A stretch of 64,000 nt of DNA, from assembly GCA_950097015.1 (NCBI GenBank), contig CATNEN010000026.1, positions 1,426,001-1,490,000 of the forward strand, in the 5' to 3' direction. This stretch comes from Macrostomum hystrix (Eukaryota; Animalia; Platyhelminthes). The notes under the pieces were generated by a model. That model had not been told where the DNA came from, ran no database searches, and saw only the letters and a program-made list of their open reading frames with translations. Positions 3,001-62,344 of this stretch are shown here, piece by piece; positions within the stretch are counted from its first letter, which is position 1, and each line of letters begins with the position of its first letter. The position numbers and the translations under genes were made by a program.

Positions 3001-5693
3001 AGTAGGAAATATTGACCGTAAAACTGGGATTTAGCCGCTGAAATCAATCCTACCTTGATTTCACTCGACTTCCCTCTGTGCGTTGAAGCTTTTCCGATTA
3101 CACGCTATTTATAAACAGACCGTCTCGTTATTCAGCGCTGCGTAGTGCTTTTAGTTGTCTAATGAGCCACACGACTATGGAGTCACAAGCCATTGTTGTT
3201 CATTAAGTTCCTATTTTTAGCTCTTTGTTATTTTCTCCATCATGCGACACCCATTGATAGAAGCAGACAATGCTTGTTGCATAAGCAATTTGAAACAAAG
3301 TGATGCATAGCACTTCATTTAGCCAAGAAAACTGTTGGATTGATTCGCCGATGGCACACTCGCTAAATTTGTGTTTATGTGTTGTTATCCTCTCTTGCAT
3401 ACTTTAGTTTATATTTTTCGTTACCGTTATTTCCTACTTTATTAAACTGAAATATTGTGTCTTATTACTTTCAGTAGAGACTGCAACATTTTTTCGATAT
3501 GTATTGAAAAGGCTTTGGAAGGCAAAAACAGTCGCCTGAATTAATATTTTTTTATCTCTTTGCTGGATGTTCAGGATTTCAAGTGAAAAACTGTCTAAAA
3601 TTATAAAAAATTACCGATATGTATAGAAAAAATTGAAATAGTTCAAAAAATGTATCAACGATATGTATCGAAAAGCATTTTTATGTGCAAATTTATTACA
3701 TTCTCCTTTTATAAGGACTTTTTGTCTATCATCTACATTTTTTCTGTTATTAAAAAGCTTTATTACTTTTTAAGCAAATCAGATTGCCAGAAAATCAATC
3801 AGCTTAGAATTCGAACTCTGGCTCACCCTCCACAGACGACGCCGACGAGATTTACGTCGACCCTGGAGCGTTCAGCAACGGATGCGGCGCTGTCGACGGA
3901 GTCGAGTGCCAGCGCTGCGGCCGCCGGCCTCGCCTCGTCGCGTCTAGCGCTGTCTGACACGCCAATTCACACTGTCATCAGCGCCGGCACCTGCCTGGAG
4001 GGCCCGGCCTCGGACAAAACCGTCGACATCATTGCCCAGCTGCTGGACAGCGGCTACCCGGCCGAGGCCCAGTCCGAGCTCTGGCAGGAGACGCCGCTTC
4101 ACCTGGCTGCTCGCTACTGCCGCGCCGACGCAGTTCAGAAGCTGCTTGAGGTCGGCAGCGCCGATCCAAACAGGCGGGACAGATCCGGTCGGACGCCGCT
4201 GCACGTCGCGATCGCCTCCGGCGCCAACGGCGTCTGCCACCTGCTGATGAGGGACCGGCGCACCGACCTTAACGCAAAGACTGATGAGGGCCTCACGCCG
4301 CTGATGATGGCTTCGATTTATCTGGCTGGCGAGGTGGCAGTTTCGCTCACCGCTGAGCCGCAGGTTGGTCACCGCAGCAGCACCTTCTGGGTTCTAGAAA
4401 TGGAGTGACAGACTCTAGGAATGGGGTGACAGATTTTAAGAATGGAGTGACAGACTCTAGGAATGGAGTGACATTCTAGGAATTGAGTGACAGATTCTAG
4501 GAATGGAGTAAAGGATTATAAGAATGGAGTGACAGATTCTAGGAACGGAGTGACAGATTCTAGAAATGGAGTGACAGATTCTAGAAATGGAGTGACAGAT
4601 TCTAGGAACGGAGTGACAGATTCTAGGAATTGAGTGATAGATTTTAGGAATGGAGTAAAGGATTATAAGAATGGAGTGACAGATTCTAGGAACGGAGTGA
4701 CAGATTCTAGAAATGGAGTGACAGATTCTAGAAATGGAGTGACAGATTCTAGAAATGGAGTGACAGATTCTAGAAATGGAGTGACAGATTCTAGGAATGG
4801 GGTGACAGATTTTAAGAATGGAGTGACAGACTCTAGAAATGGAGTGACAGATTCTAAGAGTGCAGTGACAGATTCCAGGAACGGAGTGACAGATTCTAAG
4901 AGTGGAGTGACTAGGAATGGAGTGACAGATTCTAAGAATAGAGTAACAAATTCTAGAAATTTATTGACCAATTCTAGAAGCCAAACGATAAATCTTAAGG
5001 TAATTGAGCCGGACTTAAGGATTGGAGTGATAGACTTTTAGAATGGGAGTGCCAGGCTTTAGGAGTGCCAGACTTAAGAACGGAAGTGCCAGATTCTAAG
5101 ATGAGAGTGCCAGACTTTAGGATGAGAGTGACAGACCTTAGAATGGGATTGATAGGTAGAGTGGCTGGCAGTTCTAGTTCCCAACACAGCCCGCTCAATC
5201 CGCACCAGGTTGACGTCAACGCAGTGGATCAGCGAGGCCGAACCGCGCTGCACTGGGCCGCCGCGGTCAACGCCGAGCGCGAAGTGGCCCTGCTGCTGCG
5301 CCGCGGAGCCAATCGGGACGCGCAGGACTTCTCCGAGCGGACCCCGCTTTACCTGGCCGCACTGGAGGGCAGCGCGCGCGCTGTCGCCCGCCTACTCGGC
5401 GCCGGCGCTAATCCGAACCTGCCCGACTCCGCGCTGAAGACGCCGCTGGATGTGGCCCGCGAACGACTGCACGGCGACATCGAGGCCATGCTGCTTGAGG
5501 CCGCGGCCGCCTCCACAGCAGCCGCTGCCTCCGGCTATTCAAAGCAGGCAGCCGCGGCGGCCACCGCTGTCGCCTCGCTTCTAGGCGACCTGGAGCGCTA
5601 TCCGACTCCCCCGGATCCACCGCCGCTGACTGAAGCATCTTCGTCTACCTACGCTGACTCTCCGCCACATTGGCTGCAGCAGCAGCAGCAACA

Positions 5694-5728
<35 letters not shown>

Positions 5729-5958
5729 GCTACAACTATTTGACACCATCGCCAGACAGCGCCCCGGCTTCCTCCGGCTCCGCAGTTGTCAGCGTGTCCA
5801 GTCCGCCTCAGCAGCATCGATATCAGCAGCTTCATTGTCAGCAGAAGCAGCAGCAGCAGCAGCAGGAGCAGTGTTCGTTGCCTCCGCCGCCTCCGCAGTT
5901 TTCCAACAGTCAGGTGCCGATGCTGATGCTGAGTTCTATTAAGGCAGACCTCGTGTGA
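1..5958 (+). CDS. Notch: Notch receptor, intracellular 3' portion (NLS region, ankyrin repeats, polyQ, PEST); 5' part lies outside the window
   Basis: Phase-consistent GT-AG exons <1-219, 1559-1607, 2256-2395, 3836-4363, 5209-5958. Ankyrin repeats [68 protein letters not shown] match the Notch ANK domain. YLTPSPDS matches the Notch PEST motif. PAAKRSKR is NLS-like. The exons at 1559 and 2256 rest on phase logic only. Confidence 0.88.
330..1475. repeat. Intronic minisatellite, ~28-31 bp unit TCTTCAGGAGTTTCCTCAGGCCTCTCTATTA
   Basis: Dozens of tandem copies inside a Notch intron; explains the 444-aa ORF 167..1501. Confidence 0.95.
2665..2970. repeat. GA-rich degenerate minisatellite (GAGAATAGAGATGGGA-type)
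   Basis: Tandem purine-rich units in a Notch intron; same family as 6130-7445. Confidence 0.85.
4400..5150. repeat. 21-bp minisatellite GGAGTGACAGATTCTAGAAAT
   Basis: Fills the intron between the two ankyrin exons; gives spurious VTDSRNG-repeat ORFs. Confidence 0.95.
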
Positions 5959-6129: not shown

Positions 6130-7445
6130 TGAGAAAAGAGAATTGAGATAATGAGAATAGAGATGGGAGATAATGAGAATAGAGAATTGAGATAATGAGA
6201 ATAGAGATGGGAGATAATGAGAGTAGGGATGGGAGATAATGAGAATAGAGATGGGAGATAATGAGAATGGAGATGAGAGAGAAGGAGAATAGAAATGGGA
6301 GAGAAGGAGAATAGAGATGGGAGAGAAGGAGAATAGAAATGGGAGAGAAGGAGAATAGAGATGGGAGAGAAGGAGAATAGAGATGGGAGAGAAGGAGAAT
6401 AGAAATGGGAGAGAAGGAGAATAGAGATGGGAGAGAAGGAGAATAGAAATGGGAAAGAAGGAGAATAGAAATGGGAGATTGTGAGAATGAGAGAGAAGGA
6501 GAATAGAGATGGGAGATTGTGAGAATGAGAGAGAAGGAGAATAGAGATGGGAGAGAAGATTAATAGAAATGGGAAAGAAGGAGAATAGAGATGGGAGATT
6601 GTGAGAATGAGAGAGAAGGAGAATAGAGATGGGAGATTGTGAGAATGAGAGAGAAGGAGAATAGAGATGGGAGATTGTGAGAATGAGAGAGAAGGAGAAT
6701 AGAGATGGGAGATTGTGAGAATGAGAGAGAAGGAGAATAGAGATGGGAGATTGTGAGAATGAGAGAGAAGGAGAATAGAGATGGGAGATTGTGAGAATGA
6801 GAGAGAAGGAGAATAGAGATGGGAGAGAAGATTAATAGAAATGGGAAAGAAGGAGAATAGAGATGGGAGATTGTGAGAATGAGAGAGAAGGAGAATAGAG
6901 ATGGGAGATTGTGAGAATGAGAGAGAAGGAGAATAGAGATGGGAGAGAAGATTAATAGAAATGGGAAAGAAGGAGAATAGAGATGGGAGATTGTGAGAAT
7001 GAGAGAGAAGGAGAATAGAGATGGGAGATTATGAGAATGAGAGAGAAGGAGAATAGAGATGGGAGATTGTGAGAATGAGAGAGAAGGAGAATAGAGATGG
7101 GAGATTGTGAGAATGAGAGAGAAGGAGAATAGAGATGGGAGAGAAGATTAATAGAAATGGGAAAGAAGGAGAATAGAGATGGGAGATTGTGAGAATGAGA
7201 GAGAAGGAGAATAGAGATGGGAGATTGTGAGAATGAGAGAGAAGGAGAATAGAGATGGGAGATTGTGAGAATGAGAGAGAAGGAGAATAGAGATGGGAGA
7301 TTGTGAGAATGAGAGAGAAGGAGAATAGAGATGGGAGATTGTGAGAATGAGAGAGAAGGAGAATAGAGATGGGAGATTGTGAGAATGAGAGAGAAGGAGA
7401 ATAGAGATGGGAGATTGTGAGAATGAGAGAGAAGGAGAATAGAGC
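6130..7445. repeat. GA-rich compound minisatellite downstream of Notch
   Basis: Tandem GAGAAGGAGAATAGAGATGGGAGATTGTGAGAATGA units. Confidence 0.95.
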
Positions 7446-8294
7446 CACTTCTTTAATTCATAAAATTATGAATTGCTTGAATTGAAAATTCTTGTTTATT
7501 TTATAAGCCTTGTAAATATGTTTTCGGATGTACACACTTCCAGACGCATCTGCTAATGCCATTTGATACTGTATTTAAACATTATTCATGTTTGAGAGAT
7601 ACGAATTAAGAGTAAAATGAATGACTGTTTTCTGGTAGTGTCATCACTTTTTTTACGCGTGTGCAAGTATTTTAACACCTGCACTACACTATATACAGCT
7701 TAAACCCGTTCGATTTGAAATTTTAAACATTCATTTGCATCATAATTCATCATTGATTTATATCCAGTTGAATCCTGCGATTTTGGCAATACTAGCTTCA
7801 TAACTCCCCGCCAATATTATCCCTAACACGTTATTTTTGTCTGCACAACATGCAATGTTTTGATTGGTTGCACTTGATTTTACAAATTGGCTAATTTATT
7901 ATTTTTCTTCAATAGAAAAAATCACTATCTAAAATTACGAATCTGTATTTCTTCTTTGAATTTTGTGTTTTTTTGCTCTCTTGCTAAAATTCTCGCAAAT
8001 TTCACAATGTCCTACTTTAAAAAGCATATTAGGACTGTTTTATGTAAATCTTCTAAATTATTGTGGATAAATTGATTCAGATTTGAAGTCCAATTGTCGG
8101 TAAAAAATTAAATCTTTATTATACTCGAAATTAAAAAACTAAAAATGAAGAAGTTTTTAGTAAAGCAGTTCAATTCACTAGATCATCATTCACTGCGCTA
8201 AAATATGACGGTTATTTAAATAGGGCTCATAGCAATACTGGGGCGCGTCATCTGTGTACCAGGGGGTCAGTTTTATTTAAAAACTCATTGTTAT

Positions 8295-9170
8295 AGCAAG
8301 GGCTTATTGGTAATGCAAGGCTCATTGGTAATGCAAGGGCTCATTGGTAATGCAAGGGCTTATTGGTAATGCAAGGGTCCATTGGTAATGCAAGGGCTCA
8401 TTGGTAATGCAAGGGCTTATTGGTAATGCAAGGGCTTATTGGTAATGCAAGGGCTTATTGGTAATGCAAGGGCTTATTGGTAATGCAAGGGCTTATTGGT
8501 ACTGCAAGGGTTCATTGGTAATGCAAGGGCTCATTGGTAATGCAAGGGTTCATTGGTAATGCAAGGGCTCATTGGTAATGCAAGGGCTCATTGGTAATGC
8601 AAGGGCTTATTGGTAATGCAAGGGCTCATTGGTAATGCAAGGGCTCATTGGTAATGCAAGGGCTCATTGGTAATGCAAGGGCTTATTGGTAATGCAAGGG
8701 CTTATTGGTAATGCAAGGGCTTATTGGTAATGCAAGGGCTCATTGGTAATGCAAGGGCTCATTGGTAATGCAAGGGCTCATTGGTAATGCAAGGGCTCAT
8801 TGGTAATGAAAGTGCTTATTGGTAATGAAAGTGTTTATTGGTAATGAAAGTGTTTATTGGTTATTAAAGTGTTTATTGGTAATGCAAGGGCTTATTGGTA
8901 ATGCAAGGGCTTATTGGTAATGCAAGGGCTCATTGGTAATGCAAGGGCTCATTGGTAATGCAAGGGTCCATTGGTAATGCAAGGGCTTATTGGTAATGCA
9001 AGGGCTCATTGGTAATGCAAGGGCTTATTGGTAATGCAAGGGCTCATTGGTAATGCAAGGGCTCATTGGTAATGCAAGGGCTTATTGGTAATGCAAGGGC
9101 TTATTGGTAATGCAAGGGCTCATAGGTAATGCAAGGGTTTATTGGTAATGCAAGGGCTTATTGGTAATGT
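8295..9170. repeat. 19-bp minisatellite ATTGGTAATGCAAGGGCTY
   Basis: More than 40 tandem copies visible. Confidence 0.95.
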
Positions 9171-9548: not shown

Positions 9549-9836
9549 TCAGTTGGCGATGGCGCCAGCGACATCCTTGATGTTCCTGATGACGCGAATG
9601 ACCTTCCTGACGCGGATGCCCTTTTTGGCCAGGTGCTCAGCTCCCTCCTCCTCCTCCATGTTGGACTCGTCCAGGGCCGACATCGCCTCCAGCACCGCCA
9701 GGGTGTCGGCCTCCTCGCTGGCTCCATTCGCAGCCGGGTGCGCGTTGCTATGGTTACGGCGTCGACTCTGGTGATTGGCGGTGGCCGAGACCAGGGCGGC
9801 GCACAGTAGGAGTCCGAGAGCGAGCTGCCACTTCAT
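9549..9836 (-). CDS. Secreted cationic peptide precursor, copy 1 (95 aa; putative antimicrobial peptide)
   Basis: Intronless ORF: signal peptide MKWQLALGLLLCAALVSA, acidic pro-region, KK, then GIRVRKVIRVIRNIKDVAGAIAN. High GC3; paralogous to copies 3-5. Confidence 0.85.
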   Translation of the reverse strand: MKWQLALGLLLCAALVSATANHQSRRRNHSNAHPAANGASEEADTLAVLEAMSALDESNMEEEEGAEHLAKKGIRVRKVIRVIRNIKDVAGAIAN

Positions 9837-9933
9837 GTTTGAGTCGGGTCTGAGCTCTCTCTTGATGAGGCTGAGAGTCTGCGTTTGACTGTTGGTCGTT
9901 GGATTGTCCTCCTTGCACAGTCGGGGGCTCCGA

Positions 9934-9961
9934 ATTTAAACAAGAATGGGCACGTGTTTCC
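9934..9961 (-). promoter_or_regulatory. Promoter module of peptide copy 1 (GGAAACACGTG plus TATA-like TTTAAAT)
   Basis: CACGTG at 9951-9956; same module and similar spacing upstream of copies 3, 4 and 5. Confidence 0.55.
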
Positions 9962-10834
9962 GATCTGTCCTCTAATTTGTTTGACTTCGCCCAGAATTGT
10001 AGAACTTAACCGGCTTTTAATTTGCTTCACCGAATAATTCGGCCCATGCAAACAAGCGAGATAGTTTGCTCGAGAACATTTTCAAGTCTTGATATGTTTT
10101 TCCAGCTTCGCTGCACATGCAGCGTATATTCTCAGTACAAATAAATTACAGTGTCGGCATGCGAATTGTATGACTGAGTTTCTTGTGCCAACATTCTCAG
10201 GCGGTTAATTCTATCTCGTAGCTCGTGAAACTGATATGTTAGATGGTGCTTGACATTATCTAAATTTATTCATTCTTTTGATATTTTCTATAATTCGAAA
10301 ATAAAAAATCCAACTCAATACCATTGTTCGTGGGTGTGTTTGATGCTTCTAAACCTATTCCAGTTATAATTTTTTTCGTAGAAGATACATTGATGAAATA
10401 TGAGACTACGAGTTTGGCTACTTAGAAAGTAGTAAATGCTACACGAAGAGAATAATGAAATAACACTTTAATAATACTGGTTCAAGCAACATAATTGGTT
10501 GAAAACCTGATCCCATAATTTTCTAGATCCAAGCTGGTGTGACAAAGGTAAATTAGTAGATGTTGTGACTTAAGTATTCAACCGGACTTGAATGTACTCT
10601 ATTAACTTATCGTTGCGCAATGCAAGTCCATTTTCCTATGCGTGCGTAAGCCGAGTGTGTCACTTGCGCGTGCGACACAACGTGCTCTGTTCTTACTCCT
10701 TGCTCTCCACGTGCCATTGTCACCCCCAGCCATATTTTGTTAGTATAAATATATCGACTTTCCTTTGTACGTTGTTCGTGGCCTTTGCGCTATCTAAAGA
10801 ATTCCTGGTCTACAAAAGTAGAGCCACAAAACTT

Positions 10835-11095
10835 TGCAGGTACAGGTGACTCCTGAGCACAAACGCACACCGAGACTGTACCCAGGCATACACTCACACT
10901 GCAGGTGTGTACACCTGTGTACACCTACACACATTCACTATGCCTGGGAGGTTGACCGTCAAGAGCGTAAATTGCACAAGCCTCCAAGCCTTCTCTCCGC
11001 GGCTCCGCCCCAAATGAATGCGGCCTCGCCGAGGAATCGAGCTCAGGGACCTTGGTGCTAGAGGCAAATGCGTTAACCGCTCTGCCACTGACCCC
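10835..11095 (-). mobile_element. tRNA-derived SINE family A, copy
   Basis: Reverse complement reads GGGGTCAGTGGCAGAGCGG (A-box) and GAGCTCGATTCC (B-box); body matches 21504-21860. Confidence 0.8.
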
Positions 11096-11221
11096 TCGAT
11101 GCAAATGTTCGATTCATTGTTTCCGCAGATGCAGACTGCACTTAACCTTTTTATTCTAATGGAAGCAATTAGCGTTGCATTTGAATGTGTGCACAGTTTA
11201 CTATAATTTTCGCTAAATATA

Positions 11222-11329
11222 TCGATGTTGGACAGGGCCTCCAGGGCGGCCAGGGTGTCCGCCTCCTCCGACTGCTGGCTGGGGCTGGCGGCGGCCAGGG
11301 CGGAGTCCGAGAGCGAGCTGCCATTTCAT
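11222..11329 (-). pseudogene. Peptide precursor copy 2, pseudogene
   Basis: ATGAAATGGCAGCTCGCTCTCGGACTC is followed by an 11-bp deletion in the signal-peptide codons (frameshift). Homology stops after AACATCGA, so the KK site and mature peptide are lost. The upstream promoter module is absent. Confidence 0.88.
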
Positions 11330-13469
11330 GGTTGATTCGGGTCTGAGCTGTCTTTTGATGAGGCGGCGATTCATTTCTGGTCGTCGGATTGTTGTGTGAC
11401 ACCCAGAGGTTGTCAGTGGCACAATGGGCTAATTTTGGCGTTAGGGTTAGCGGCGGAGCGCTAACACGTCTAAATCTTGCCCCACATGCAGTCCTGGGTT
11501 CGAATCCGCACCGCACACACACACACGCACACACACGCACACAGAGTTAACAGTAGAACTACCAGGGGGTGGGGAATTCTCCCAACCTGACAATTTTTTG
11601 TGCTGCACCCGAACGGAGCAATACAAGCACACGAAACTCAAGAACACGGGCCAATTTTTTGTTGCGTATCTTCTGAAACAATAATCAAGTCGCCAGCTCT
11701 TCAGTCCTTCGAGATATTCAATGGTTCTGGCCGAAGGTCAGATAGGCGCTAGTGTATTTCACACACCACTATACACTAATTTGCACTGCGCCTCAGTGCG
11801 GCCTTGCCAGGCCTTCAAACTTTATCAGCATGTCACCCGAATGTGCCTGCATTATCTCCGTCTTCGGTTGTCACCTACCTTTATCTAGACGGACTGCGGG
11901 ACCTTCGAATGCAAAAAATGTGGAATTAGGCCACTCTGGACAACCTGACGCGAATTTCTAAAATTTCACTGCTGAAGCCTAAATATTAGGCGCAGCTCAA
12001 CTACAGTACACCATCGCCTGGTCTGTCAACCAATCAGTCATCGGTCCAATCAGAACCGATTTCAGGTCCGCTTCTCAAACCAAAAATACCCTCGGCGGTC
12101 GATTTTGAGTTATAAATTTTTCAAACGACACCTTTTTCCGAGGTAGAACGTTTCAATGTGCTTGGAATTATATGTCATTCTAGTAATTTGTACTTGAAAA
12201 GAGTTAGTAAATCACAGAAAGCTTCGTGTTTGCATTAATGCTCGTACTTAGTTTATAGCTTGGTGAGTATATATCTATACCTTACCTTATATCTAAGTCT
12301 ATACCTTTTTGCATAGCATTGCTTTGCCAGAAATACTCGTGCTTCCATAGTTTCCTTCTGGAGAGTTAAAACTGTACGATCGATGATTAATGGAAATCAG
12401 AGCTCGGCGTTCTCAGACAATTTTATATATCTGTGATTAATATTTTTTTTCACGGCTGGGACTCGATGTTGGTGAGTCTCACCGTCCCCGGCGCCACCCG
12501 GCAGAGCCGCTGGGGCAAGGGCCGGCAGTTCTGCATTGCCAGCAGCTCGATGGAGGCGTCCACGCCGATTGCGTTCCCGACGACGCTCGATGCGACACCG
12601 AAGGCTTCGCTGTCCTCGCCGACTCCCTGTCCAGCTGCAGTTAGCAGCCGCAGCACAGGCAACAGCAGGGCGCGGCTCACCGTCCTTATCTGGACGAGCC
12701 TGGTGACCAGTATCGCCCGGCATATTTGCACCGGAGCGCGTTTTACTGAGACGGCCTTCCGACCTGCTGAGACAGCGGCGCCTGCGGCTGGCTGGGCACG
12801 TGATCAGGGCTGAAGCCGACTGCCCTGAGCCGCTGCAGGATGTGCTTCTAGTGGACTCTGCAGGGACCGCGCAGGCGCGGACAGGGACGATCGGCCTGCT
12901 CTTCTCCGACGCGCGCGCCACCGAGCCAGGCTGACGGAGTAAAGCAACTGGCCCTTAGGCGCGCGTTTTGAAGCTTCCCCCTTTTTCAGACCACTGCGTG
13001 GTCGGCGAGTTGCGTTTATTATTAAAATTTGACAGTATATGACAGCTAGTGGGTTCCGGGTTCGAAACATTGGATAGATATTTTTTCACGGCAGATATCT
13101 CTGTTGAAACTGTAGTAGAAATTGCTGAGCTTTGCAGAATTTCGCATCCTCTGTCTCCAGTGTCCTAGGAAATCTCACTGAAAGTTTTCCCTGTGAATTT
13201 TAACTGACTTTGTCTTTGAGCTCAAAGAACAGTTTCGCAATATACAACAATACTCTTTCTTGTTGCTATGCCTACTTCGCTGCATTCGAGATTGAGGCCC
13301 GCGTGTGGTCCTTCTACCATGGATGCCTTGGAGCGAGCGGTTCGGGCCTTCTAGACAATAAAGGGGCCTGAGACAACGTGTTGTTTGAAGCATTCTGCAG
13401 AACTCTTGAGGCCAGGACGACGCTGCCTCACCCGGTCAGCTGGATCATGTACCGGATCCGGAATCACTG

Positions 13470-13720
13470 TATCGCGGCCCACGCGGACATTTCTACACGC
13501 TAACATTAAATCTACCTTCGGTGTCCGGTGAGCTCATCCGCAAGCTGAGTGTTCGACAATGGTCCGGTGTTCGTCGGCCAGGACTTCATCGGCTTTTGCA
13601 AGTCCAACTGGATCCGGTGCACAAAGAGCAGTCCGTACTACGCCAAGTCAAATGGGCTGGTCGAGCGGCTGACGAAGTCATTCAAGACTGCGATGGAGGC
13701 GTCTCGGAGCAGCCAGTCCG
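13470..13720 (+). mobile_element. Gypsy/Ty3 integrase fragment
   Basis: FDNGPVFVGQDFIGFCKSNWIRCTKSSPYYAKSNGLVERLTKSFKTAM matches the integrase core (second Asp through the catalytic Glu region). Confidence 0.75.
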
Positions 13721-14234
13721 CATGCGACGACCGACCGGACTCCGGCCGAGCTTTTCCTGAAACGCCCGCAGCGGACCAGGGATGGATCTGCTGCGACCGT
13801 CGGCACGCGACAGGGTTTTGGGGGCGCAAGCGCCACAGAATGCCCTTGTCCCTCCACTGCCCTCCGCAAATCCACGCTGGGAATTAACCGCAGGGACATC
13901 AGGACCCGCGCCGTCCCTCGGAGAAGCCGCGCTGTGAACAGATGGCGAGCTGTTCAGTCATGAAATACAACGGATTTGGGCTGGCTTTGAGTAGAAATCC
14001 GGTTTAAGCCGTTTTGACTTAAACCCAAATGACCAGAGGTACATACATACGATGGTAGTCGGGCTTTCGACCGACTCCAAAACCACCCTTGACTCGAAGA
14101 ACTAGCTCATGAGAAGCTAGGGAGAGATGCCACGAAAGAGATGGATCAGTACCCGGAACCGTCGGGCGCAATGGCAGCAGTCTCCTCTCCTTTGCATCAC
14201 CAATCAGGACATCAGCTTCGATACCGCCAACTTA

Positions 14235-14440
14235 TTGACGAGATGTACACGCCTGTGTGAGCGTGTGCCTGTGTACAGAATATGTACTGCATAGTACCTG
14301 TGTGTGTGCTCAGCAGGAGTCAGCGAAATGGACAGAATTGTCTCCTTGCTGGCGGTGTGTCTAGTGTGACCGAATGATGTACCAGTGCACACAATTAGTT
14401 AATCATCTTAATCTAAATCTTAATCTTAATCTAATCTAAA
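14235..14440 (+). mobile_element. SINE family A, 3' fragment with AT-rich tail
   Basis: GTGTGCCTGTGTACAG...GGAGTCAGCGAAATGGACAGAATTG matches the SINE A 3' half; followed by a TTAATCT-type tail. Confidence 0.65.
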
Positions 14441-14702
14441 CAATGACACGTTAAAATGACATTTTGATCTAGTTCATATCGATTTAAAATAGGATTTGTA
14501 CTTGCTACAGTGTATTTAAATTCTTAAATCAGCGATAAGTAAAATAGGAAGCTACTTAAAACTTCGTAACAGTGGCCTGAATTTTCGCAAGTCATGGAAG
14601 TCCTTATAGATCACACTGACCGAGCTCTGCAAAGAAACTGATTGAGGTCGGGAATAGACGATCTTGTAACAAACTGTAGCGATTGAAGTTCTATCCGCAA
14701 CT

Positions 14703-14921
14703 TCACAGGTATTGTCCTATAGGCATTCTGCGAAAGCGATATCCAGCAAGGCGGAAGCGCTTCTTGGCCAGGTGCTGGACAGATTCCACCAGCTCGGACT
14801 CGTCCATGTTGGACAGGGCCTCCAGGGCGGCCAGCGTGTCCGCCTCCTCCGCCTGCTGGCTGGGCCTGGCGGCGGCCAGGACGGCGCACAGCAGGAGTCC
14901 GAGAGCGAGCTGCCACTTCAT
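14703..14921 (-). CDS. Secreted cationic peptide precursor, copy 3 (72 aa; different mature peptide)
   Basis: Same signal peptide and propiece as the paralogs, then KK followed by RFRLAGYRFRRMPIGQYL. Start assigned to the MKWQ ATG shared by all copies. Confidence 0.75.
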   Translation of the reverse strand: MKWQLALGLLLCAVLAAARPSQQAEEADTLAALEALSNMDESELVESVQHLAKKRFRLAGYRFRRMPIGQYL

Positions 14922-14981
14922 GTTTGAGTCGGGTCTGAGCTGTCTCTTAATGAGACTGAGAGTCTGCGAATGAGGCTCCAA

Positions 14982-15012
14982 ATTTATATTCGCTTACTTA
15001 GCACGTGTTTCC
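14982..15012 (-). promoter_or_regulatory. Promoter module of peptide copy 3 (TATAAAT plus GGAAACACGTG)
   Basis: TATAAAT at 14982-14988 and CACGTG at 15002-15007 on the coding strand. Confidence 0.6.
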
Positions 15013-16090
15013 GTGTTTGAGTAGCACATGCCTCAAGAGCAGAGCACATTATCATTGTTTGAGTTCAGCAAACAAATTTCAGTGTTTCAAGTATTTGCAC
15101 AGTTCAATTTATCATTACTCATTCGCAACAGTGGCTAAATTGAATCGTTTTGCATTAAAAATCCATGTTTAATTCTGGATTCACCTACTAGTAGTAGTAT
15201 GCGGTCCCAGTCGAAACAAAAATCTAACGTGGCAGGGACTCCGATGCTACGCCTCTCACCTTGTTTAGGATGCTCTAGTTAGTGCTGAGAAATAAGGACT
15301 ATCGTAGAAGCTAGGATCTCTGCACAGGCATTGAACATTATAGGAGCATTATATTATGGTTACCGCTCACCAGTCCATATCTGTATCCGTTTCTTTTGAA
15401 AGCGTTTTTTGTCCGTTTATTTCCGGTTCTGTGTCCACTATTTAGTACATTACGTCCGGTCTTAAAAAAAGGATACAAGCGTTACAATTTTGTCCGTTTC
15501 TTAAGCACTAAAAAACCCAATCCGGACACATTTCCGGAGTAAATTTCCGCTATTTCCGAATAACCGAATTGTTGCCCCTACGAAATGGACAAAAACACAT
15601 GCATTTTCCCAGGGTATAGGTAGTGGAGTCGGACTTAACCAGAGGATGCAGCTGGGCGTTGTGATGACCTTTCTTGACACTTCAGAGCCTATTTGTCATG
15701 ATAACAATGGGCCACATAGAGTCGCCATGTCAATAAGTCGAACATATCATATCAGGAAACCAAAGGATGCCCGGACTAAATATGTGATCACGTAGGTTTT
15801 CAAGTAAATATGAAGTCACTTATATTTTTCAGGAACTGGACATATAGTCTGGTGAGCAAGCTTGGAACTAAACTTGTGTAGACATATCAGCGCACTTTAC
15901 CGTGAGTGAGGAATCGTTCAAAGATTGTGTAAGTGTTTAAGGTTTTCAAGCGTACCAGTGACCTCATCTCATATTTGGAATGGAATCGCATTGATGCCAT
16001 GCAAAAATATAATAACAATTTTTCTATGCGCAATTCATATCACTATTGTTGCTTTATTCAGTCTAGTTAAAATGTATGATTCACTTAAGG

Positions 16091-16525
16091 CAGCGGTAGG
16101 CAAACTTATTTGCCGGCGGGCCAAAGAGAGAACCTAAAAGACGACAGCGGGCCGCATCGACTGTATAAATATGAGATAGGGGAGAGATGAGACACGGGAG
16201 AGATTAGACACGGGAGAGATGAGACACGGGAGAGATTAGACACGGGAGAGATTAGACACGGGAGAGATTAGACACGGGAGAGATGAGACACAGGAGAGAT
16301 TAGACACGGGAGAGATTAGACACGGGAGAGATTAGACACGGGAGAGATGAGACACAGGAGAGATTAGACACGGGAGAGATGAGACACAGGAGAGATTAGA
16401 CACGGGAGAGATTAGACACGAGAGAGATGAAACAGGACACTGTAGATGTCAGAAGGGGCAACGGGCCGGATTTGGGAGCTTCGAGGGCCGCATCTGGCCC
16501 GCGGGCCGGAGTTTGCCGACCCCTG
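16091..16525. mobile_element. hAT (Buster-type) MITE carrying an internal minisatellite
   Basis: TIRs CAGCGGTAGGCAAAC / GTTTGCCGACCCCTG; perfect 8-bp TSD ACTTAAGG; internal GAGAGATTAGACACGG repeats; second copy at 41152. Confidence 0.92.
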
Positions 16526-17524
16526 ACTTAAGGAAAGTTTATTATGAATAGACAGTTAAACCTTCGAAAGACCCTAGCTGAAATATTTTCTATTTTCTCG
16601 AATCTAGTTTCTTAGATTAAATAAAGCATATCTAGACAAACAAGGACTCATTTTACAGAAAATCAAGCAAGCAATTATCGAAGGGCTTTATGCTTTCATA
16701 TCTTGGGAGATACCACAGAATACACGGGAGAGATTTGTGTATTCTGTGGGAGATACATTTGTTAGATTATGTTAAATTAATTGTCTATGGTCGAAACAGT
16801 CGGAAAAATTAATGACCGGCCAGTAATCATTCTAGTGTAGCGGTTTTGTGATCGCGAGTTCGCGAGTAATTAAGAGCTAGGCTGTGGTTTTAGTATTGTT
16901 TGTTGAGTCTCGTATGAGATCAGAAAGGTTTGATTATTGCTGTATCGGGTGAAGTATGTTTATAGTGTATTTTAGTGTTTCCGGAAGTTTCTAGAAATTT
17001 TCTGTACGGTAAATTAAACAAATTTAATTAAGCTATTCATTATTAGATGCAAGCGCATGAGGAGTTTGTGTTAGATATACAATAACTTATGGTGAATAAT
17101 GCAATTATTGTACTAAAGGAATATTCTGAGAAGAATGGCGAAGTTTAATTTGTACTACATCGAAGAATTTTCTAGAAATAAATGTTTTCGTACTGTATAG
17201 AATGTTCTCGAAGGTCAATTGGATATCGTACAGAAGTTTCGCGAATTAAGGTCACTACACTAGCACAAAGGGAAATTTCGACCAATTTTGCCCATCTGTG
17301 GTAAATTGTTTCATAAAAACTTTAAAGTACATTCGAAATTTTTATGCAGAGCTCTGTATTTGTATTTTAGGATTGTATAATATATTTTTATTTCGTGGTC
17401 TGTGTGAATTTTTCAATGTACTTAGGCATACGAAGTATAAGGGCTGATAAATATTTTGTGGGAAGAGAGTTCGGTCGAATCAATTTCAGTCCAGGTCAGT
17501 TTGTCCGTTTTCCCAATTTGTTCT

Positions 17525-17755
17525 TCAGTTTGCGACGGCGCCAGCGACGTCCTTGACGTTCCTGATGATGCGGATGACCTTCCTGATGCGGATGCCCTTC
17601 TTGGCCAGGTGCACGGCTCCCTCGTCCGACAGACCCTCGATGTTGGACAGGGCCTCCAGGGCGGCCAGGGTGTCCGCCTCATCCGACTGCTGGCTGGGGC
17701 TGGCGGCGGCCAGGGCGGCGCACAGCAGGAGTCCGAGAGCGAGCTGCCACTTCAT
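17525..17755 (-). CDS. Secreted cationic peptide precursor, copy 4 (76 aa)
   Basis: Signal peptide, acidic propiece, KK, GIRIRKVIRIIRNVKDVAGAVAN; AATAAA downstream near 17387-17392. Confidence 0.87.
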   Translation of the reverse strand: MKWQLALGLLLCAALAAASPSQQSDEADTLAALEALSNIEGLSDEGAVHLAKKGIRIRKVIRIIRNVKDVAGAVAN

Positions 17756-17843
17756 GGTTGAGTCGGGTCTGAGCTGTCTCTTGATGAGGCCGAGAGTCTG
17801 CGTTTGACTGTTAGTCGTTGGATTGTCCTCATCGCCCTGCAGG

Positions 17844-17878
17844 TTTTTATAGCCGAATATTCGGCTCGTGTTTCCGGT
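17844..17878 (-). promoter_or_regulatory. Promoter module of peptide copy 4 (TATAAAAA plus ACCGGAAACACGAG)
   Basis: Canonical TATA about 90 nt upstream of the ATG; E-box variant CACGAG at the same spacing as in the paralogs. Confidence 0.6.
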
Positions 17879-18394
17879 CAGTGTTTGAGCTACTGGCAGC
17901 GTCTTGAACAGAGTACACAATGTTTCGATTTCCACAGACATTATTCTAGCTCATTTATTTGAGAGATTCTGTGCGACTTTCAGCCCAAATAAGCAAATAT
18001 TGTAAGGTAAACTTTGTGTTTGCTGAGAACTAAATTTATTGTCTGTTAACTTTACCCCAATTAGTGGAAAAGGTCAGCCGCTACAGTAGCACCGAGAAGC
18101 CTTTTTCAATTTCTATGTAGACATTTTTTCTACCTCGCAAACAAACCAGTTCAGTTCGCATGCTCGCAAGAGTCCACGAGCCTTTTCTCTAGCACATTTA
18201 TTGCATCTTGCAGCCGCATGACGAAGACTTTCTTTTGTCCTTAGGGTCCTGAAGACATGATCAGTGATTGGTTTTATTACGTGATCGGTAAACTAAAACA
18301 AGCTTAAGTGTTTTTTTCGACTTCGAATATCATCATTTAGCAGTCCAATGTTTTAGGCCTATGATCTTATTCTAAAGAAAATAATTGATCACAC

Positions 18395-18675
18395 CTGCCT
18401 CAATTGCGCCAAATGTGCAGCCGACTGCACAGCCGCAGCTATTGCGCGGCGCATCTGAAGACTGCGTACAGCTGTTCAGTCCATGGACTGAGGGCGCGAC
18501 ACCTGCACTTAATTACCCCAGCTGATGCTGGCACCCATTTAACAGTTTGGTGAACTGAAGCATTGCAGAGTTTAAGTGTCTTGCTAAAGGATACAAATTG
18601 TTCCAGTGGAGTTGGGAATCGAACCTCCGACTTTCTTTTAAGTCATGAGTCCGACGCTCTAATCACAAGGCAACA
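18395..18675 (-). mobile_element. tRNA-derived SINE with CORE(MIR)-like central domain
   Basis: tRNA-like head with GGTTCGATTCC B-box; GCAAGACACTTAAACTCTGCAATGCTTCAGTTCACCAAACTGTTAAATGGG aligns by eye to the MIR CORE consensus recalled from memory. Confidence 0.72.
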
Positions 18676-19024
18676 ACATCCTATGTTCATGTAGATACAG
18701 GGTCATTAATTTCCTGACAAACACTGTTCTTAGTTGTACATCGCTTAATATTCACGAGTAAATACTGTAGTTGCCAAATACACGCCCTGTTGTGCCTTCT
18801 CCGGGAAGTTGCTGAAAATCTATGTTTCTAGGAAACGGTAAAATAATGGATATTGTTGGTTGATAAATAGCTCCTCATGAAAGCAAGAATTATCATTACT
18901 CGGTGAGTGACATTATACATGTGCAACTAGGCTACAACCCCAATTTTTAGACTTGTGGTTAGAGCATCTGAGAATTAAGTCTGCATTGCTTGAGTTCACG
19001 CAGCTGTTAAAAGTGTACCAGCAT

Positions 19025-19130
19025 TATCAGGGGTAATTGAGGGTGGGTATGGCGCCCCTCCCCCAGTCCATGGACTGAACAGCCGTACGCAGCCTTCAGA
19101 TGCTCCACGCAGTAGCATTTGGTGCGCAGA
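19025..19130 (+). mobile_element. CORE-like SINE 3' fragment
   Basis: CAGTCCATGGACTGAACAGCCGTACGCAGCCTTCAGATG shared with the 9.3 kb and 18.5 kb copies. Confidence 0.6.
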
Positions 19131-19550
19131 GCACATTTTGAATATAGCCTTTAAAAAAGCTTAAACTTGAGTAGCACTATTCGGATTTCTACAATTTTCA
19201 ATTCAAATTTCAACCAACGAAATACTGAACTCGTGCGTTGCTTTGCGTCTTCAGATTAAAAAACTCGAAGTTAATTTAATCTTCGAAGATGATAAAATGT
19301 CAGGAAAAAAGGCAGTACGATTAGTGAATACAGATTTAACGGTATTACACAGGTCTCTTCAGTGTAACAATCATGTATTTGAAAAGAACGAGTATTTTCG
19401 GGCTTCTGTAAGATCCTTTGACTGCTAAAGTTCTCAAGGGAAATTCAATTTAATTGAGGGTGTAGACAGGTGTCATAAATATGGAGTCCAGAGAGTTCGG
19501 TGCGATCCACTTCAGGCCAGGTCAGTTAGTCCACGATCCTGATTCGCTCT

Positions 19551-19781
19551 TCAGTTGGCAATGGCGTTAGCAACGTCCTTGACGTTCCTGATGACGCGGA
19601 TGACCTTCCTGATGCGGATGCCCTTCTTGGCCAGGTGCACGGCTCCCTCGTCCGACAGACCCTCGATGTTGGACAGGGCCTCCAGGGCGGCCAGGGTGTC
19701 CGCCTCCTCCGCCTCCTGATTGGGTCTAGCGGCGGCCAGGGCGGCGCACAGCAGGAGTCCGAGAGCGAGCTGCCACTTCAT
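19551..19781 (-). CDS. Secreted cationic peptide precursor, copy 5 (76 aa)
   Basis: Signal peptide, acidic propiece (8 D/E), KK, GIRIRKVIRVIRNVKDVANAIAN. Confidence 0.87.
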   Translation of the reverse strand: MKWQLALGLLLCAALAAARPNQEAEEADTLAALEALSNIEGLSDEGAVHLAKKGIRIRKVIRVIRNVKDVANAIAN

Positions 19782-19878
19782 GTTTGAGTCGGGTCTGAGC
19801 TGTCTCTTGATGAGGCCGAGAGTCTGCGTTTGACTGTTAGTCGTTGGATTGTCCTCCTTGCACAGTCGGGACTCCGAA

Positions 19879-19911
19879 GTTATAGCCGAGTTTTTTGCAC
19901 GTGTTTCCGGT
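19879..19911 (-). promoter_or_regulatory. Promoter module of peptide copy 5 (TATAAC plus ACCGGAAACACGTG)
   Basis: CACGTG at 19898-19903, 13 nt from the TATA-like element, as in copies 3 and 4. Confidence 0.6.
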
Positions 19912-21031
19912 CAGTGTTTGATAATAGTCCCGATCGCAACGTGTGAAGAGCACACAGAGCACACTTCTCACATTTTTTCGCCTTCGTTAAGGAGTTAAAG
20001 CCTATTTCTTGAGTAGATTGACTCAGCAACAGGGCTACATTTAAATTTGTTTACCCAAGCTGAAGTGTGACAAGATTGTGCACTATTTGCTGAAGCTTTT
20101 GCACTTCGACCATATTTAAACAAAAATAATTCGTGGCATCCAGTGCAATGGCAGATGTTGAGTTTTCTGCTGATCTTTTAAACTAAAACGACTCCAATAA
20201 GTTGGTATTCGGAGATCAATATTTGTACAAAAATAAATAATAATGGTAAAAGCGAGATTGATATTGAAGATGTTGATGCAAATTTCAACTTTCAGTGTCT
20301 ATGAACAACAAACGGTAAGCGGCCATCACAAAACACATAAAAATGTATTTTTAGTTTGCTACGGCGACAACTCACACTTCGAAGAAATTGCAAAACCTTT
20401 TTAAGTACGGTTACATTAGGACAAGACAGCTTGTCAGAAATGCTGAATACTGAGCTGCTGCTAAGCCGAGTTTACAAAAATACCTGCATAATTGGTCTCA
20501 TCTAATCTACGCTCGTATTAGCAACATTTAGTGCCTTGCAAATCCACTTTTTTCCTAGCGTAATTAGCGGCCTACGACAATCTACGAGTATTAGGAGATT
20601 AAATTGTCAAGGGCCGAACCTTCTTAAAGTACACACTCAACTACACAATCGACAAAATCATGGGGTACATAGAATTTCTCAGAATCTGCAGCTTAATTAA
20701 GAGATGAGTATAGACGACAAAGGCACAGTTGAGCCTTCTTTCTACTCAGCTAAAAGAGGTCGATGGATTTTGATATTCTACACAAATGAAGATGAAAATT
20801 TGAGTCATTATTGTCAGCAGGGTATGATTGGAAATAAACAGAATAACCAAACAAATGAGGGGCAAAGTTAACAAAAAGTTCAACAAATCATCAAAGTAAC
20901 CAAATATTTGCATCCTTAATTGAGCAGCTGGTCAACAGGCTCAAACTGATAAAATAGAAAACTCAAGAAGCAAAAGCAACGTTTTCTCGTTGGAAAGAAG
21001 CGGTAGAAAATCAAGCAAATTTGCAGGTAAC

Positions 21032-22713
21032 TTAGGCCAGCTCTTTAATCTTGGCCCGGATGTTCGCGAAGTACCTGAGCCGGTAAGTGAGCTCTTTGGC
21101 CAGCTCGAGGTCGTTGGCTTCGTCAAACGCCCTGGTGAGTTCATCAGTGAGCTGGGCAGTATCGGCTTCGACACGCTCGGCGATGTTGCCGATGGTGCTT
21201 CGATCGGCCTCCATCAGGGCCTCGTTGAGGTCCAGCATTTCGGCTAGGAACTCCTGCGGCAGCGACAGATCCCCGGAGCTGCTTGACGTCTCTTCGGTTA
21301 GCATGGCAACGCCGCGCAAGTTAAGCAGGTAAACGGCCCGATTAACGGGATCTGTTAAGCAGCCATAGGCCGCGTTCACATTGGCCGACTGTTGCTGGGC
21401 TAGATTGCGCTCCTGCGGGTGTTCAGGTGCGGCTAAATGTGTCCCATTGTGTCCTTGCTAGCTCATCGCTAAATACATAAACACTCAGATAGGCCGTTAC
21501 AAAGGGGGTCGGTGGCAGAGCGGTCTAACGCGTTTGCCTCTCGTACCAAGGTCCCTGAGCTCGATTCCGCGGCAAGGCCACTTTCATTTGGGGCGCAGTC
21601 GCGGAGGGAAGGCTTGGGGGCTTGTCGTGCAATCTACGCCATTGAGGGCCAGCCTCCAAGGCACAGTGAAAGTGTAAACTGCCTGACGATGAGAAGGTCA
21701 TGGCAGATGTACACACCTTTGTGAGTGTGTGCCTGTGTACAGTATCTGTGCATGTGTGCTCAGGAGTCAGCGGAAAGAGCAGAATTGCCTCCTCGCTGGC
21801 TGCGGGACTAGTGTCACCAAATGATGTGCTGCTGCACGCGGTCCTTCTTATTATCATTATAGGTCGTTACACGAAATGTAAATGTCATTTTCGTTTTGGA
21901 TTGGCAGTGCTTTTCAGTCAGTCTACATCCTCCGAGCGCTTCACACGTCCTGTTGCTAACAACTCATAAAAACGTACAGATGAAATTACAATCGTTAAGT
22001 TGCTAGCTTTCAAACAGCTCGTGCTACATTTTCAGTCAAATCCTGTGCTTTGTGCTCCCCTTGCCTAGCAACCAGTCAATCATCATTCATTGTCTATTTG
22101 ATGAATCCTTCAATGCGGTAGTTTAATCCACTTGATTTTTCACAAACTCGAAGTGCATAAATATACTACTATTTACTGCTCTTGTCTTTTTACTGCTAAG
22201 CCTCTGATTAAACAGACTTGTAAAGCAGGCGCCAACCTCTTCAGTTGAGTTGGAAAACTTGTCCGGATGCAGCTGCCACTGCAGCTGTCGCATAGCGGTA
22301 GCCAATTTAGCCGAATCCACCCGATAGGTAGGCTTTGCACCTGGGCCAAACAATAGCTGATAATAATTAATGCTGATTCCGCTGTCAGGGCTTTGTATTG
22401 TGCCGCAGGCGGTGCAGAACAAGCCGCCACCAGACGGTTTAGAGCACTTCCAACAGGCGTGGCCACCGCTATTGTTATTATTATTATTATTATTGTTAAT
22501 ACTAGCCTTTCTACTACAAAGGCACCGACATGGAGAAGGAAACGCAACACCGCGTGTCGGCAACATCAAAGGCGCTCTAGTTAAATTTGCGGCGCCGCCA
22601 GTTGGAGGAGTCATAAAAGCGGCTGGCTTTGATGTTGATGACAAATTAATTGCACAGGTGGCATAGCGGCCAATAATTAGGCAGGTGGCGGTACAGGCCC
22701 TTTTCGGCAACAT
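21032..22713 (-). CDS. HSCB: Mitochondrial Fe-S cluster co-chaperone HscB/HSC20
   Basis: Exons 22713-22237 and 21412-21032 (phase 0). CWKC...CTAC tetracysteine motif, J-domain HPDKF, QQQSANVNAAYGCLTDPVNRAVYLL, C-terminal helical domain. The exact start ATG is uncertain. Confidence 0.92.
21504..21860 (+). mobile_element. tRNA-derived SINE family A, near-complete copy in the HSCB intron
   Basis: A-box TGGCAGAGCGG, B-box GCTCGATTCC, about 350 bp, TTATTATCATTAT tail; at least seven related copies in the window. Confidence 0.85.
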
Positions 22714-25761: not shown

Positions 25762-27618
25762 GGAAGACAGACAGACAGCCAGACAGAGAGACAGACAGAC
25801 AGAGAGACAGACAGAGAGACAGACAGACAGACAGGATGGCAGACATACAGACAGAGATATAGACAGACAGACAGACAGACAGGAAGACAGACAGACAGGA
25901 TGGCAGACATACAGACAGAGATATAGACAGACAGACAGACAGACAGGAAGACAGACAGACAGGATGGCAGACATACAGACAGAGATATAGACAGACAGAG
26001 AGACAGACAGACAGACAGACAGACAGGATGGCAGACATACAGACAGAGATATAGACAGACAGACAGACAGACAGGAAGACAGACAGACAGGAAGACAGAC
26101 AGACAGGAAGACAGACAGACAGGAAGACAGACTGATAGAGAGACAGACCAGACAGACAGTAGGGAAAAACCAACCTCGGTGCAGGCCAGCCTGTCAAGCG
26201 ATTCAGTCGGCTCTTTCATCTCCTCGGCGGCGCCTTTAAACATGACGGCGCGGCAGTCGTCAAAGGCGTGAATCAGCTCGTGACGCATCACGCTGCAAAT
26301 GCCGGGCTTGGACCAGAACTCATTTTCGCAGATGGCCACCTGTGTGTTGAGATTGACATTTTAACTAATAATAAAACTAATGCTGATTATATTAAAATGA
26401 CTGTAAAATAGCAATAAAAGTTTTTTTGAGGATGCGATTATCACAAATTTCGACGTGTAACATCTTCACAGATCATAAAAATTTTGCAGGAGATTATTTC
26501 AGGTTAGAAGAGAGATTCTCATGGGTTAGAAGAGAGATTCTCATGGGTTAGAAGAGAGATTCTCATGGGTTAGAAGAGAGATTCTCATGGGTTAGGAGAG
26601 AGATTCTCATGGGTTAGGAGAGAGATTCTCATTGGTTAGAAGAGAGATTCTAATGGGTTAGGAGAGAGATTCTCATGGGTTAGAAGAGAGATTCTCATGG
26701 GTTAGAAGAGAGATTCTAATGGGTTAGGAGAGAGATTCTCATTGGTTAAGGAGAGAGATTCTCATGGGTTAGAAGAGAGATTCTCATGGGTTAGGAGAGA
26801 GATTCTCATGGCTTAGAAGAGAGATTCTCATTGGTTAGGAGAGAGATTCTCATGGGTTAGAAGAGAGATTCTCATGGGTTAGAAGAGAGATTCTCATGGG
26901 TTAGAAGAGAGATTCTCATGGGTTAGGAGAGAGATTCTCATGGGTTAGGAGAGAGATTCTCATGGGTTAGAAGAGAGATTCTCGGGTTAGGAGAGAGATT
27001 CTCATGGGTTAGAAGAGAGATTCTCATGGGTTAGGAGAGAGATTCTCATTGGTTAAGGAGAGAGATTCTCATGGGTTAGGAGAGAGATTCTCATGGGTTA
27101 GAAGAGAGATTCTCATGGGTTAGAAGAGAGATTCTCATGTGTTAGGAGAGAGATTCTCATGGTTTAGGAGAGAGATTCTTAAGGTTAAAATATCGAGAAT
27201 GTGATCGAGAATCTAAAGAGGCAGGTGAGACATTTCCAGGTGAAATTGATGGCATAGCCAGCTGTTGCACCTGTTTCCGCAACGGGTCATAGCCGCCACT
27301 GAAGCTAAAGCGGCACCGCTCGCAGGACAGATTGTCGGCTAGCCGAAAATTGCAGCCCCTGCTGCGTAAGGCCACTATGAGATAGCGCACAAAAGGATCC
27401 GTCAATGAGCAGTCCAGCACATTCTTCAGGCAGCGATTGTGTCGCCACGCCCTGAAGCCAATGAATCTAGAAGGCGGCTTGTACTCGGAGTCCGGGTCTC
27501 GCTTGGGAAACACCGAGTAACTAAAATCTTCATCGGACTTTGCAGTCTTTGCGGCTCCTGACGCGTCGCTTCGACTGTCTGGCGTCGGCTGAACTGGAGG
27601 CTGACGCTCCGACGGCAT
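23743..27618 (-). CDS. ATP23: Mitochondrial inner membrane protease ATP23
   Basis: Exons 27618-27271, 26339-26175, 24096-23743, all phase 0 (about 288 aa). HELIHAFD metalloprotease motif, LACTEIRAA across the intron, C-terminal EPFGRIP. Confidence 0.93.
24127..25572 (+). mobile_element. Decayed Tc1 transposon in ATP23 intron 2
   Basis: Transposase 24457-25481 with frameshifts and stops: HTH, WSDESKF, FQQDNDPK, WPAQSPDLNPIENLW. Left end TA-CAGTG...TAAGACCAC; degenerate right TIR GTGGTCTTATTTCAATGT at about 25539. Confidence 0.9.
25702..26160. repeat. (GACA)n compound microsatellite
   Basis: Inside ATP23 intron 2. Confidence 0.95.
26500..27180. repeat. 22-bp minisatellite GGGTTAGRAGAGAGATTCTCAT
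   Basis: About 30 tandem copies in ATP23 intron 1. Confidence 0.95.
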
Positions 27619-57355: not shown

Positions 57356-57429
57356 GCGTGGGAATACTCAATATTTTGTATTCCCTAACGACCTGCTTTC
57401 CAGCTGAGCGCCAGGGACTGAAGAGCAGT

Positions 57430-62330: not shown

Positions 62331-62344
62331 GGATCACAAACACC

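Follow-up and report, generated by a model that had tools for sequence, protein, structure and literature searches.

A Tandem Cluster of Macrostomum hystrix Genes Predicted to Encode Secreted Peptide Precursors with a Conserved Prepro Region and Variable Cationic Tails

The Gene Cluster

A stretch of 64,000 nucleotides (nt) from the flatworm Macrostomum hystrix (GenBank assembly GCA_950097015.1, contig CATNEN010000026.1, positions 1,426,001 to 1,490,000), here called the window, contains five co-oriented intronless paralogs (c1 to c5) that encode small prepropeptides with cationic C-terminal tails and that, on sequence comparison, belong to a family so far known from Macrostomum alone. A preliminary description of the window had reported five such paralogs within about 10 kb; the open reading frame (ORF) listing, self-BLAST of the window and a five-way DNA alignment confirm all of them and place them on the minus strand. 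Four copies (c1, c3, c4 and c5) are intact and one (c2) is a pseudogene, and tblastn with all family members as queries finds no sixth copy within the 64-kb window. The coding sequences (CDS), given with their lengths in amino acids (aa), and the related features are as follows.

9549-9836, minus strand: c1 CDS, 95 aa, intact (ORF, DNA and protein alignments)
9552-9620, minus strand: part of c1 coding for its 23-aa peptide
about 11222-11372, minus strand: c2 pseudogene (blastn 85% over 162 nt; alignment; motif scan)
14703-14921, minus strand: c3 CDS, 72 aa from the conserved Met, frame intact
14706-14759, minus strand: part of c3 coding for its 18-aa tail
17525-17755, minus strand: c4 CDS, 76 aa, intact; the mechanical ORF extends upstream to 17941 through the 5' untranslated region (UTR)
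17528-17596, minus strand: part of c4 coding for its 23-aa peptide
17464-17888, minus strand: c4 block homologous to c5
19551-19781, minus strand: c5 CDS, 76 aa, intact
19554-19622, minus strand: part of c5 coding for its 23-aa peptide
19490-19921, minus strand: c5 homology block, covering approximately the entire transcription unit and the core promoter

The preliminary description had assigned to the intact copies a signal peptide, an acidic propiece, a Lys-Lys (KK) site and a cationic tail. All four have this architecture and in each the KK site is followed by a tail of net charge +5, which in c3 is an 18-mer and not a 23-mer. The c1 precursor has a long acidic propiece between signal peptide and KK site, bearing an insertion of 19 aa, and closes with the 23-aa cationic peptide. 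The propiece of c5 carries the eight Asp and Glu residues counted earlier and has a net charge of -7. As had been described, c1, c4 and c5 end in 23-mers, in which every Arg, Lys and Asp is invariant, the differences amount to Ile/Val swaps plus one Gly/Asn exchange, and the C-terminus has no Gly. The c3 copy retains the signal, propiece and KK site and carries an unrelated tail, rich in Arg, Tyr and Phe, that includes Pro-Ile-Gly and ends in Gln-Tyr-Leu. The homology of c2 covers the 5' UTR, the signal and the early propiece only; it has suffered one frameshifting deletion, and its 3' half, from the last part of the propiece through the KK site to the peptide, is gone.

The homology between copies is limited to about 430 bp of promoter, UTRs and CDS, made up of about 140 nt before the ATG, the unbroken CDS and about 60 nt past the stop codon. 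Within this block, c4 and c5 are 88.7% identical across 432 nt (self-BLAST). The spacers of 1.5-3.5 kb between the copies are mutually unrelated, and self-BLAST of the window reveals no terminal repeats or flanks common to the copies.

The intact genes evolve under purifying selection. The ratio of non-synonymous to synonymous substitution rates (dN/dS) for the whole gene is 0.4-0.6 among the window copies and 0.4-0.5 when c1 is compared with c4 and c5. Between c1 and c5, the synonymous distance (dS) has reached 0.32 with the frame still open and a dN/dS of 0.40. The 23-mer is under constraint as well, its own dN/dS within the window, from small counts, being 0.29-0.42.

A Shared Promoter and Short Transcription Unit

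Upstream of the intact copies lies a motif, CGGAAACACG(T/A)GC, which contains the E-box CACGTG and is followed by a TATA-like box about 20 nt downstream; a GGAA core that we take to be ETS-like adjoins the E-box. The motif CGGAAACACGTGC with a TATA-like box is present in all four intact window copies, c4 having a variant, and in 7/7 of the M. lignano family genes with fetched upstream sequence. A motif scan finds the core GGAAACACG four times in the 64 kb, each time at the promoter position before an intact copy, and finds no promoter motif at c2.

9950-9962, minus strand: c1 promoter motif CGGAAACACGTGC, starting 126 nt before the ATG, with TTTAAA at -104
15001-15013, minus strand: c3 promoter motif CGGAAACACGTGC, starting 92 nt before the ATG, with TATAAA at -67
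17864-17876, minus strand: c4 promoter motif with CACGAG replacing CACGTG, starting 121 nt before the ATG, with CTATAAA at -97
19897-19909, minus strand: c5 promoter motif CGGAAACACGTGC, starting 128 nt before the ATG, with CTATAA at -104

The TATA-like boxes of the intact copies thus lie 67-104 nt before the ATG, and c3 has a shorter 5' UTR than the other copies. The E-box block is invariant upstream of all seven M. lignano genes and is the longest such stretch in a promoter alignment that is otherwise loosely conserved. The family contig from sequencing run SRR31628392 (see below) has a degenerate motif, GGAAAAACGTGG, followed by the TATA-like GCATAAAT. Poly(A) signals are found 96-133 nt past the stop codon in c1, c4 and c5, that of c5 being ATTAAA at 97 nt; none is found within 300 nt of the stop codon of c3. 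These features outline a compact transcription unit of about 430 nt whose promoter is kept across species, and they argue strongly, if indirectly, for real and co-regulated genes. The conserved E-box promoter is a new addition of the present analysis.

Relatives in Macrostomum

The family, which has no name, is defined here as the Macrostomum prepropeptides with a MKWQLALGLLLC signal. With c5 as query, a search of 5.8 billion proteins returned 11 M. lignano "hypothetical proteins" at expectation (E) values from 7e-12 to 6e-5. A 15-member profile, run with no word filter against 1.84 billion cluster representatives, retrieved only 12 clusters; all the named ones are from M. lignano, one is a 929-bp contig from run SRR31628392, and this exhaustive profile search returned no homolog outside Macrostomum. 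The similarity of the copies to each other and to these relatives is far beyond chance. From the 33 proteins fetched, 31 distinct precursors could be parsed, and together with the paralogs listed in PMC10414684 the M. lignano family has more than 30 distinct proteins.

The relatives share with the window copies a near-identical signal, an acidic propiece with a LEAL-type motif, a basic site that is usually KK and a cationic tail, and their genes are likewise single-exon, clustered and preceded by the E-box and TATA promoter. Five members lie within one 20-kb stretch of M. lignano, with pairs elsewhere. The CDS of window and M. lignano genes are 75-81% identical at the nucleotide level, which assigns the window to a different Macrostomum lineage or to a very divergent cluster. 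By eye, the signal of one M. lignano group (fAMP-LP-142) differs from that of c5 at 1/18 positions, with Thr for Ala at position 13. The tails differ: none in M. lignano significantly matches the 23-mer of c1, c4 and c5 by BLASTP, and the window 23-mer lacks an amidation Gly. Six M. lignano loci (L001-L004, L006 and L007) have no flanking gene in common with the window.

Several M. lignano members have unusual features. P0002 (73 aa) is labelled 'SERPIN domain-containing protein' in UniRef, P0004 has a duplicated acidic propiece, and P0020 (634 aa) carries a C-terminal family propiece and tail without a signal and is probably a fused gene model. The 929-bp genomic contig from SRR31628392 (L005) holds the only member outside the M. 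lignano assembly, and its tail is a five-fold Pro/Arg repeat. A 16-bp minisatellite of 15.6 copies (16180-16428), about 1.1 kb downstream of c4, resembles a 32-bp minisatellite at L006 10705-11241, in the same relative orientation and about 0.5 kb downstream of the M. lignano P0031 gene (fAMP-LP-142). This likeness may be a remnant of shared locus ancestry or may reflect a common repeat family.

Conserved Prepro Region and Variable Tails

The signal is almost invariant across the family and the acidic propiece is moderately conserved. In a 15-sequence alignment, residues W3, Q4, L7-A13, L15 and A18 of the signal and both Lys of the KK site are invariant; in a wider set of 17 sequences, the invariant signal residues are reduced to M1, W3, L7-L10 and L15. 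A few more distant members have Glu-Lys (EK), or Arg-Lys (RK) followed by an Arg run, at the basic site. Pairwise BLASTP alignments terminate exactly at this KK or EK site, and c3 and the family member P0006 align over the prepro region only.

Beyond the site, every tail has a positive net charge (+1 to +14); the tails range from 9 to 38 aa and fall into at least six sequence types:

the 23-mers of the window, with helix-compatible periodicity
Gly-terminated 9-11-mers in which (V/I) and R alternate and the hydrophobic moment has a strand-like peak at 180 degrees
one 33-mer built from Pro/Arg repeats
one 25-mer that contains two Cys
an octamer rich in His, with a C-terminal Gly
long peptides rich in Arg, Trp and Tyr, ending in Gly-Lys

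The charge of the propiece (-4 to -14) mirrors that of the tail, with a Spearman rho of -0.71 (n = 31), a correlation that is only suggestive because paralogs are not independent data points. Recognition of a single cassette family with many cargo types is new here.

Tandem Repeats Finder detects an 18-nt repeat of 1.9 copies within the 23-mer coding parts of c4 (17566-17600) and c5 (19592-19626), which encodes a duplicated six-residue hydrophobic-Arg unit, and the family precursor P0014 carries a five-fold Pro/Arg repeat. These repeats suggest that the tails grow, and in part diversify, by slippage of short hydrophobic-Arg units.

Within the 23-mer, the best 18-residue stretch (residues 4-21) has a helical moment of 0.57-0.59 on the Fauchere-Pliska scale, compared with 0.31 +/- 0.11 for shuffled sequences (p ~0.01-0.02). 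An AlphaFold2 model of c5, built from a 17-sequence alignment, places helices at residues 4-17, 26-37 and, at modest confidence, 47-75, and at most hints at helical propensity.

Earlier Listings of the Family

The preliminary description had called the peptides unrecognised. Their M. lignano relatives are, however, annotated as hypothetical proteins, and at least three subgroups of them appear, not recognised as one family, in a published list of antimicrobial peptide (AMP) candidates. The S5 File of Irvine et al. 2023 (PMC10414684) contains three M. lignano groups with the MKWQLALGLLLC signal, all marked SignalP-positive: fAMP-LP-142 (BOX15_Mlig024774g1 and g2), for which 100% of the AMP predictors were positive; fAMP-LP-116 (Mlig008283g1 and Mlig025063g1), with 73-91% positive; and fAMP-LP-544 (Mlig001477g4), with 82% positive. 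One family was split into three groups because the pipeline grouped sequences by their predicted mature part, and the groups were dropped, at the steps "Same genome" or "Ungrouped", because single-genome groups were discarded (PMC10414684).

Literature searches with peptide strings, gene identifiers and the topic found no characterisation of the family beyond the supplement of Irvine et al. The only near-threshold Pfam hit, PF22991 on P0004 (27.1 bits, cut-off 27), was judged spurious and falls in the duplicated acidic repeat.

Comparison with Known Peptide Systems

The architecture of the precursors had been likened to that of frog-skin dermaseptin-type AMP precursors. The elements do correspond, as the many paralogs of the frog superfamily also place a dibasic site between a conserved signal with acidic propiece and a C-terminal cationic peptide that is hypervariable and often helical. 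However, there is no sequence homology, the dibasic site is KK here and Lys-Arg (KR) in the frog precursors, and the window genes are intronless. Because membership in the frog family was tested and gave no Pfam match, the likeness is an analogy only. In cathelicidins, one conserved pro-region carries helical, Pro/Arg-rich, Cys-loop and other peptides, and the Macrostomum tails have a similar breadth; unlike cathelicidins, the Macrostomum precursors have no cathelin domain (a pro-domain with four conserved Cys) by Pfam search and their propiece of about 33 aa is acidic and Cys-free. The arminins of Hydra are also lineage-restricted; they have a signal and pair an anionic N-terminal part with an antimicrobial C-terminal part that is strongly cationic. 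They were compared by description only, and the profile search described above did not return them or any other sequence from outside Macrostomum. Host-defence peptide families such as the dermaseptin superfamily, cathelicidins and arminins are marked by this combination of a conserved prepro region, cationic cargo that is hypervariable, an acidic propiece matched to it in charge, and many paralogs in clusters. Neuropeptide genes have the reverse pattern of conservation, the mature peptide being the conserved part.

Proposed Function and Alternatives

The genes of the window probably encode secreted, membrane-active peptides of the host-defence type that are restricted to the Macrostomum lineage. 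This reading is favoured because the prepro region is conserved, the cationic cargo is hypervariable, the acidic propiece is matched to it in charge and the paralogs are clustered. We infer from the sequences that the peptides are secreted, cleaved at the KK site, helical in membranes and antimicrobial or cytolytic. In the proposed mechanism, a tandem cluster of small intronless genes, each with its own promoter, would supply precursors that the 18-aa signal peptide routes into the secretory pathway. The acidic, probably helical propiece would mask the cargo electrostatically until the KK site is cut, presumably by a protease of the prohormone-convertase type, to release the C-terminal polycationic peptide, which for c1, c4 and c5 would have 23 residues and a charge of +5. 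Residues 4-21 of this peptide could form an amphipathic helix, and the peptide is expected to attach to anionic (microbial) membranes and perturb them. The promoter with its E-box and TATA box, the 5' UTR, the signal and the propiece would be kept as a cassette, the cargo varying by substitution and by slippage of repeat units.

A number of results weigh against this assignment. The four window precursors and one homolog, searched at E up to 10, match no Pfam family, including the frog signal-propeptide family. An exact-protein look-up finds no record of the c1 and c5 proteins in the assembly collection, and neither the 23-mer nor the family profile has a match among the sequences of solved structures, which include many AMPs. 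The whole 23-mer, on the Eisenberg scale, exceeds its shuffles in hydrophobic moment at p 0.06-0.09 only; it is less amphipathic than the best 18 residues because hydrophobic and basic residues alternate, strand-like, over the first six positions. The helical amphipathicity of the preliminary description therefore holds for residues 4-21, where only 1-2% of shuffles score as high, and less so for the full peptide (6-9%), so that it is real but moderate. The AlphaFold2 model has low confidence, with a mean predicted local distance difference test score (pLDDT) of 63 and a predicted template modelling score (pTM) of 0.28. Convertases favour KK less than KR or Arg-Arg (RR), and the RK pair at residues 5-6 of the 23-mer makes further cleavage possible, so that the product may be shorter. 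The flagged M. lignano peptides were never synthesised (PMC10414684). The architecture and rapid diversification of the genes also fit secreted reproductive peptides or toxins.

That last point leads to another secreted role, in which the same prepro cassette would deliver seminal-fluid or other reproductive peptides, or toxins directed against predators or prey, and which we regard as unlikely. Lineage restriction, tandem expansion and a hypervariable mature part are typical of reproductive proteins and of toxins such as conopeptides, and the sequence holds nothing that separates such peptides from AMPs; however, extreme cationicity with a charge-balancing propiece fits membrane-active defence best, and the AMP predictors were positive for the M. 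lignano relatives (PMC10414684). The genes might instead encode precursors of neuropeptides or peptide hormones, from which short signalling peptides would be released by way of the signal, spacer and dibasic site, together with an amidation Gly in M. lignano. The many M. lignano members that end in peptides of 8-10 residues followed by Gly or Gly-Lys, a classical amidation signal, agree with such processing. This reading is decidedly improbable, since conservation is reversed, the prepro region being kept while the peptide varies strongly in length (9-38 aa), composition and charge, since there are dozens of paralogs, and since an amidation signal is absent from the window 23-mers, as it is from c3, which terminates in Gln-Tyr-Leu. 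A search of the M. lignano neuropeptide literature, to which the surveys in subscription journals did not belong, found no characterisation of the family.

Decaying duplicates, or ORFs riding on a repetitive element, would make the cluster non-functional, and the pseudogene c2, the c3 gene with its missing poly(A) signal, and the repeats and possible retroelement fragment between the copies agree with that. Yet four reading frames have stayed open although dS reaches 0.45, their dN/dS is below 1, and cross-species conservation extends over promoter motif and TATA box as well as 5' UTR and signal, so that non-function seems very remote. Transposon-borne ORFs were rejected because the copies cease to be homologous where the transcription unit stops; terminal repeats and flanks are not shared.

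The host-defence reading can be extended, tentatively and on a judgement that falls just short of even, to a cathelicidin- or dermaseptin-like cassette of Macrostomum's own. In such a system one promoter, 5' UTR, signal and propiece would serve dozens of clustered genes and several classes of cargo, arising partly via slippage.

Genomic Surroundings

The flanks of the cluster hold ordinary eukaryotic housekeeping genes.

5065-5958, plus strand: exon of an ankyrin-repeat protein (Pfam scan)
21032-21379, minus strand: exon with an HscB C-terminal domain (Pfam scan; no hits when used as a search query)
27157-27618, minus strand: exon of an M76 peptidase (below the Pfam cut-off)
32722-33216, minus strand: SepSecS exon (Pfam scan)
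36346-36807, minus strand: galactosyltransferase exon (Pfam scan)
57325-57939, plus strand: exon of ribosomal protein S11 (below the Pfam cut-off)

Repetitive sequences are also present. Between c2 and c3, on the plus strand (13549-13887), the first half of an ORF resembles by eye part of a retroelement integrase and has no Pfam match at E up to 0.01, and a 19-bp repeat of 8.9 copies (9000-9169) lies about 380 nt downstream of the c1 stop codon. By eye, long ORFs at 43844-45891 and 49412-52021, both on the minus strand, resemble a retrotransposon Gag with an aspartic protease and a Helitron/PIF1-type helicase element, respectively. Tandem-repeat arrays with long spurious ORFs in multiple frames occur at 167-1501, 4634-5041, 7029-7448, 40294-40928, 54166-54684, 59431-59876 and 62243-62959.

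Significance

Gene-encoded AMPs of flatworms are very poorly known, and our literature searches found none described for Macrostomum. The family provides a compact set of candidate effectors, with more than 30 in M. lignano and at least four in the window. Its history also exposes a blind spot of AMP mining, in which grouping by mature peptide split one family into unrelated singletons that were then discarded. The family is a natural experiment in which one secretory cassette carries very different types of cargo, and its short, sharply defined promoter element could explain co-regulation. M. lignano is a transgenic and transparent model, and expression and regulation of the genes are therefore directly describable. 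If the peptides are antimicrobial, they would constitute the first gene-encoded arsenal of linear AMPs described in a free-living flatworm, co-regulated by a factor of the basic helix-loop-helix (bHLH) type and tractable in a genus in which transgenesis is available.

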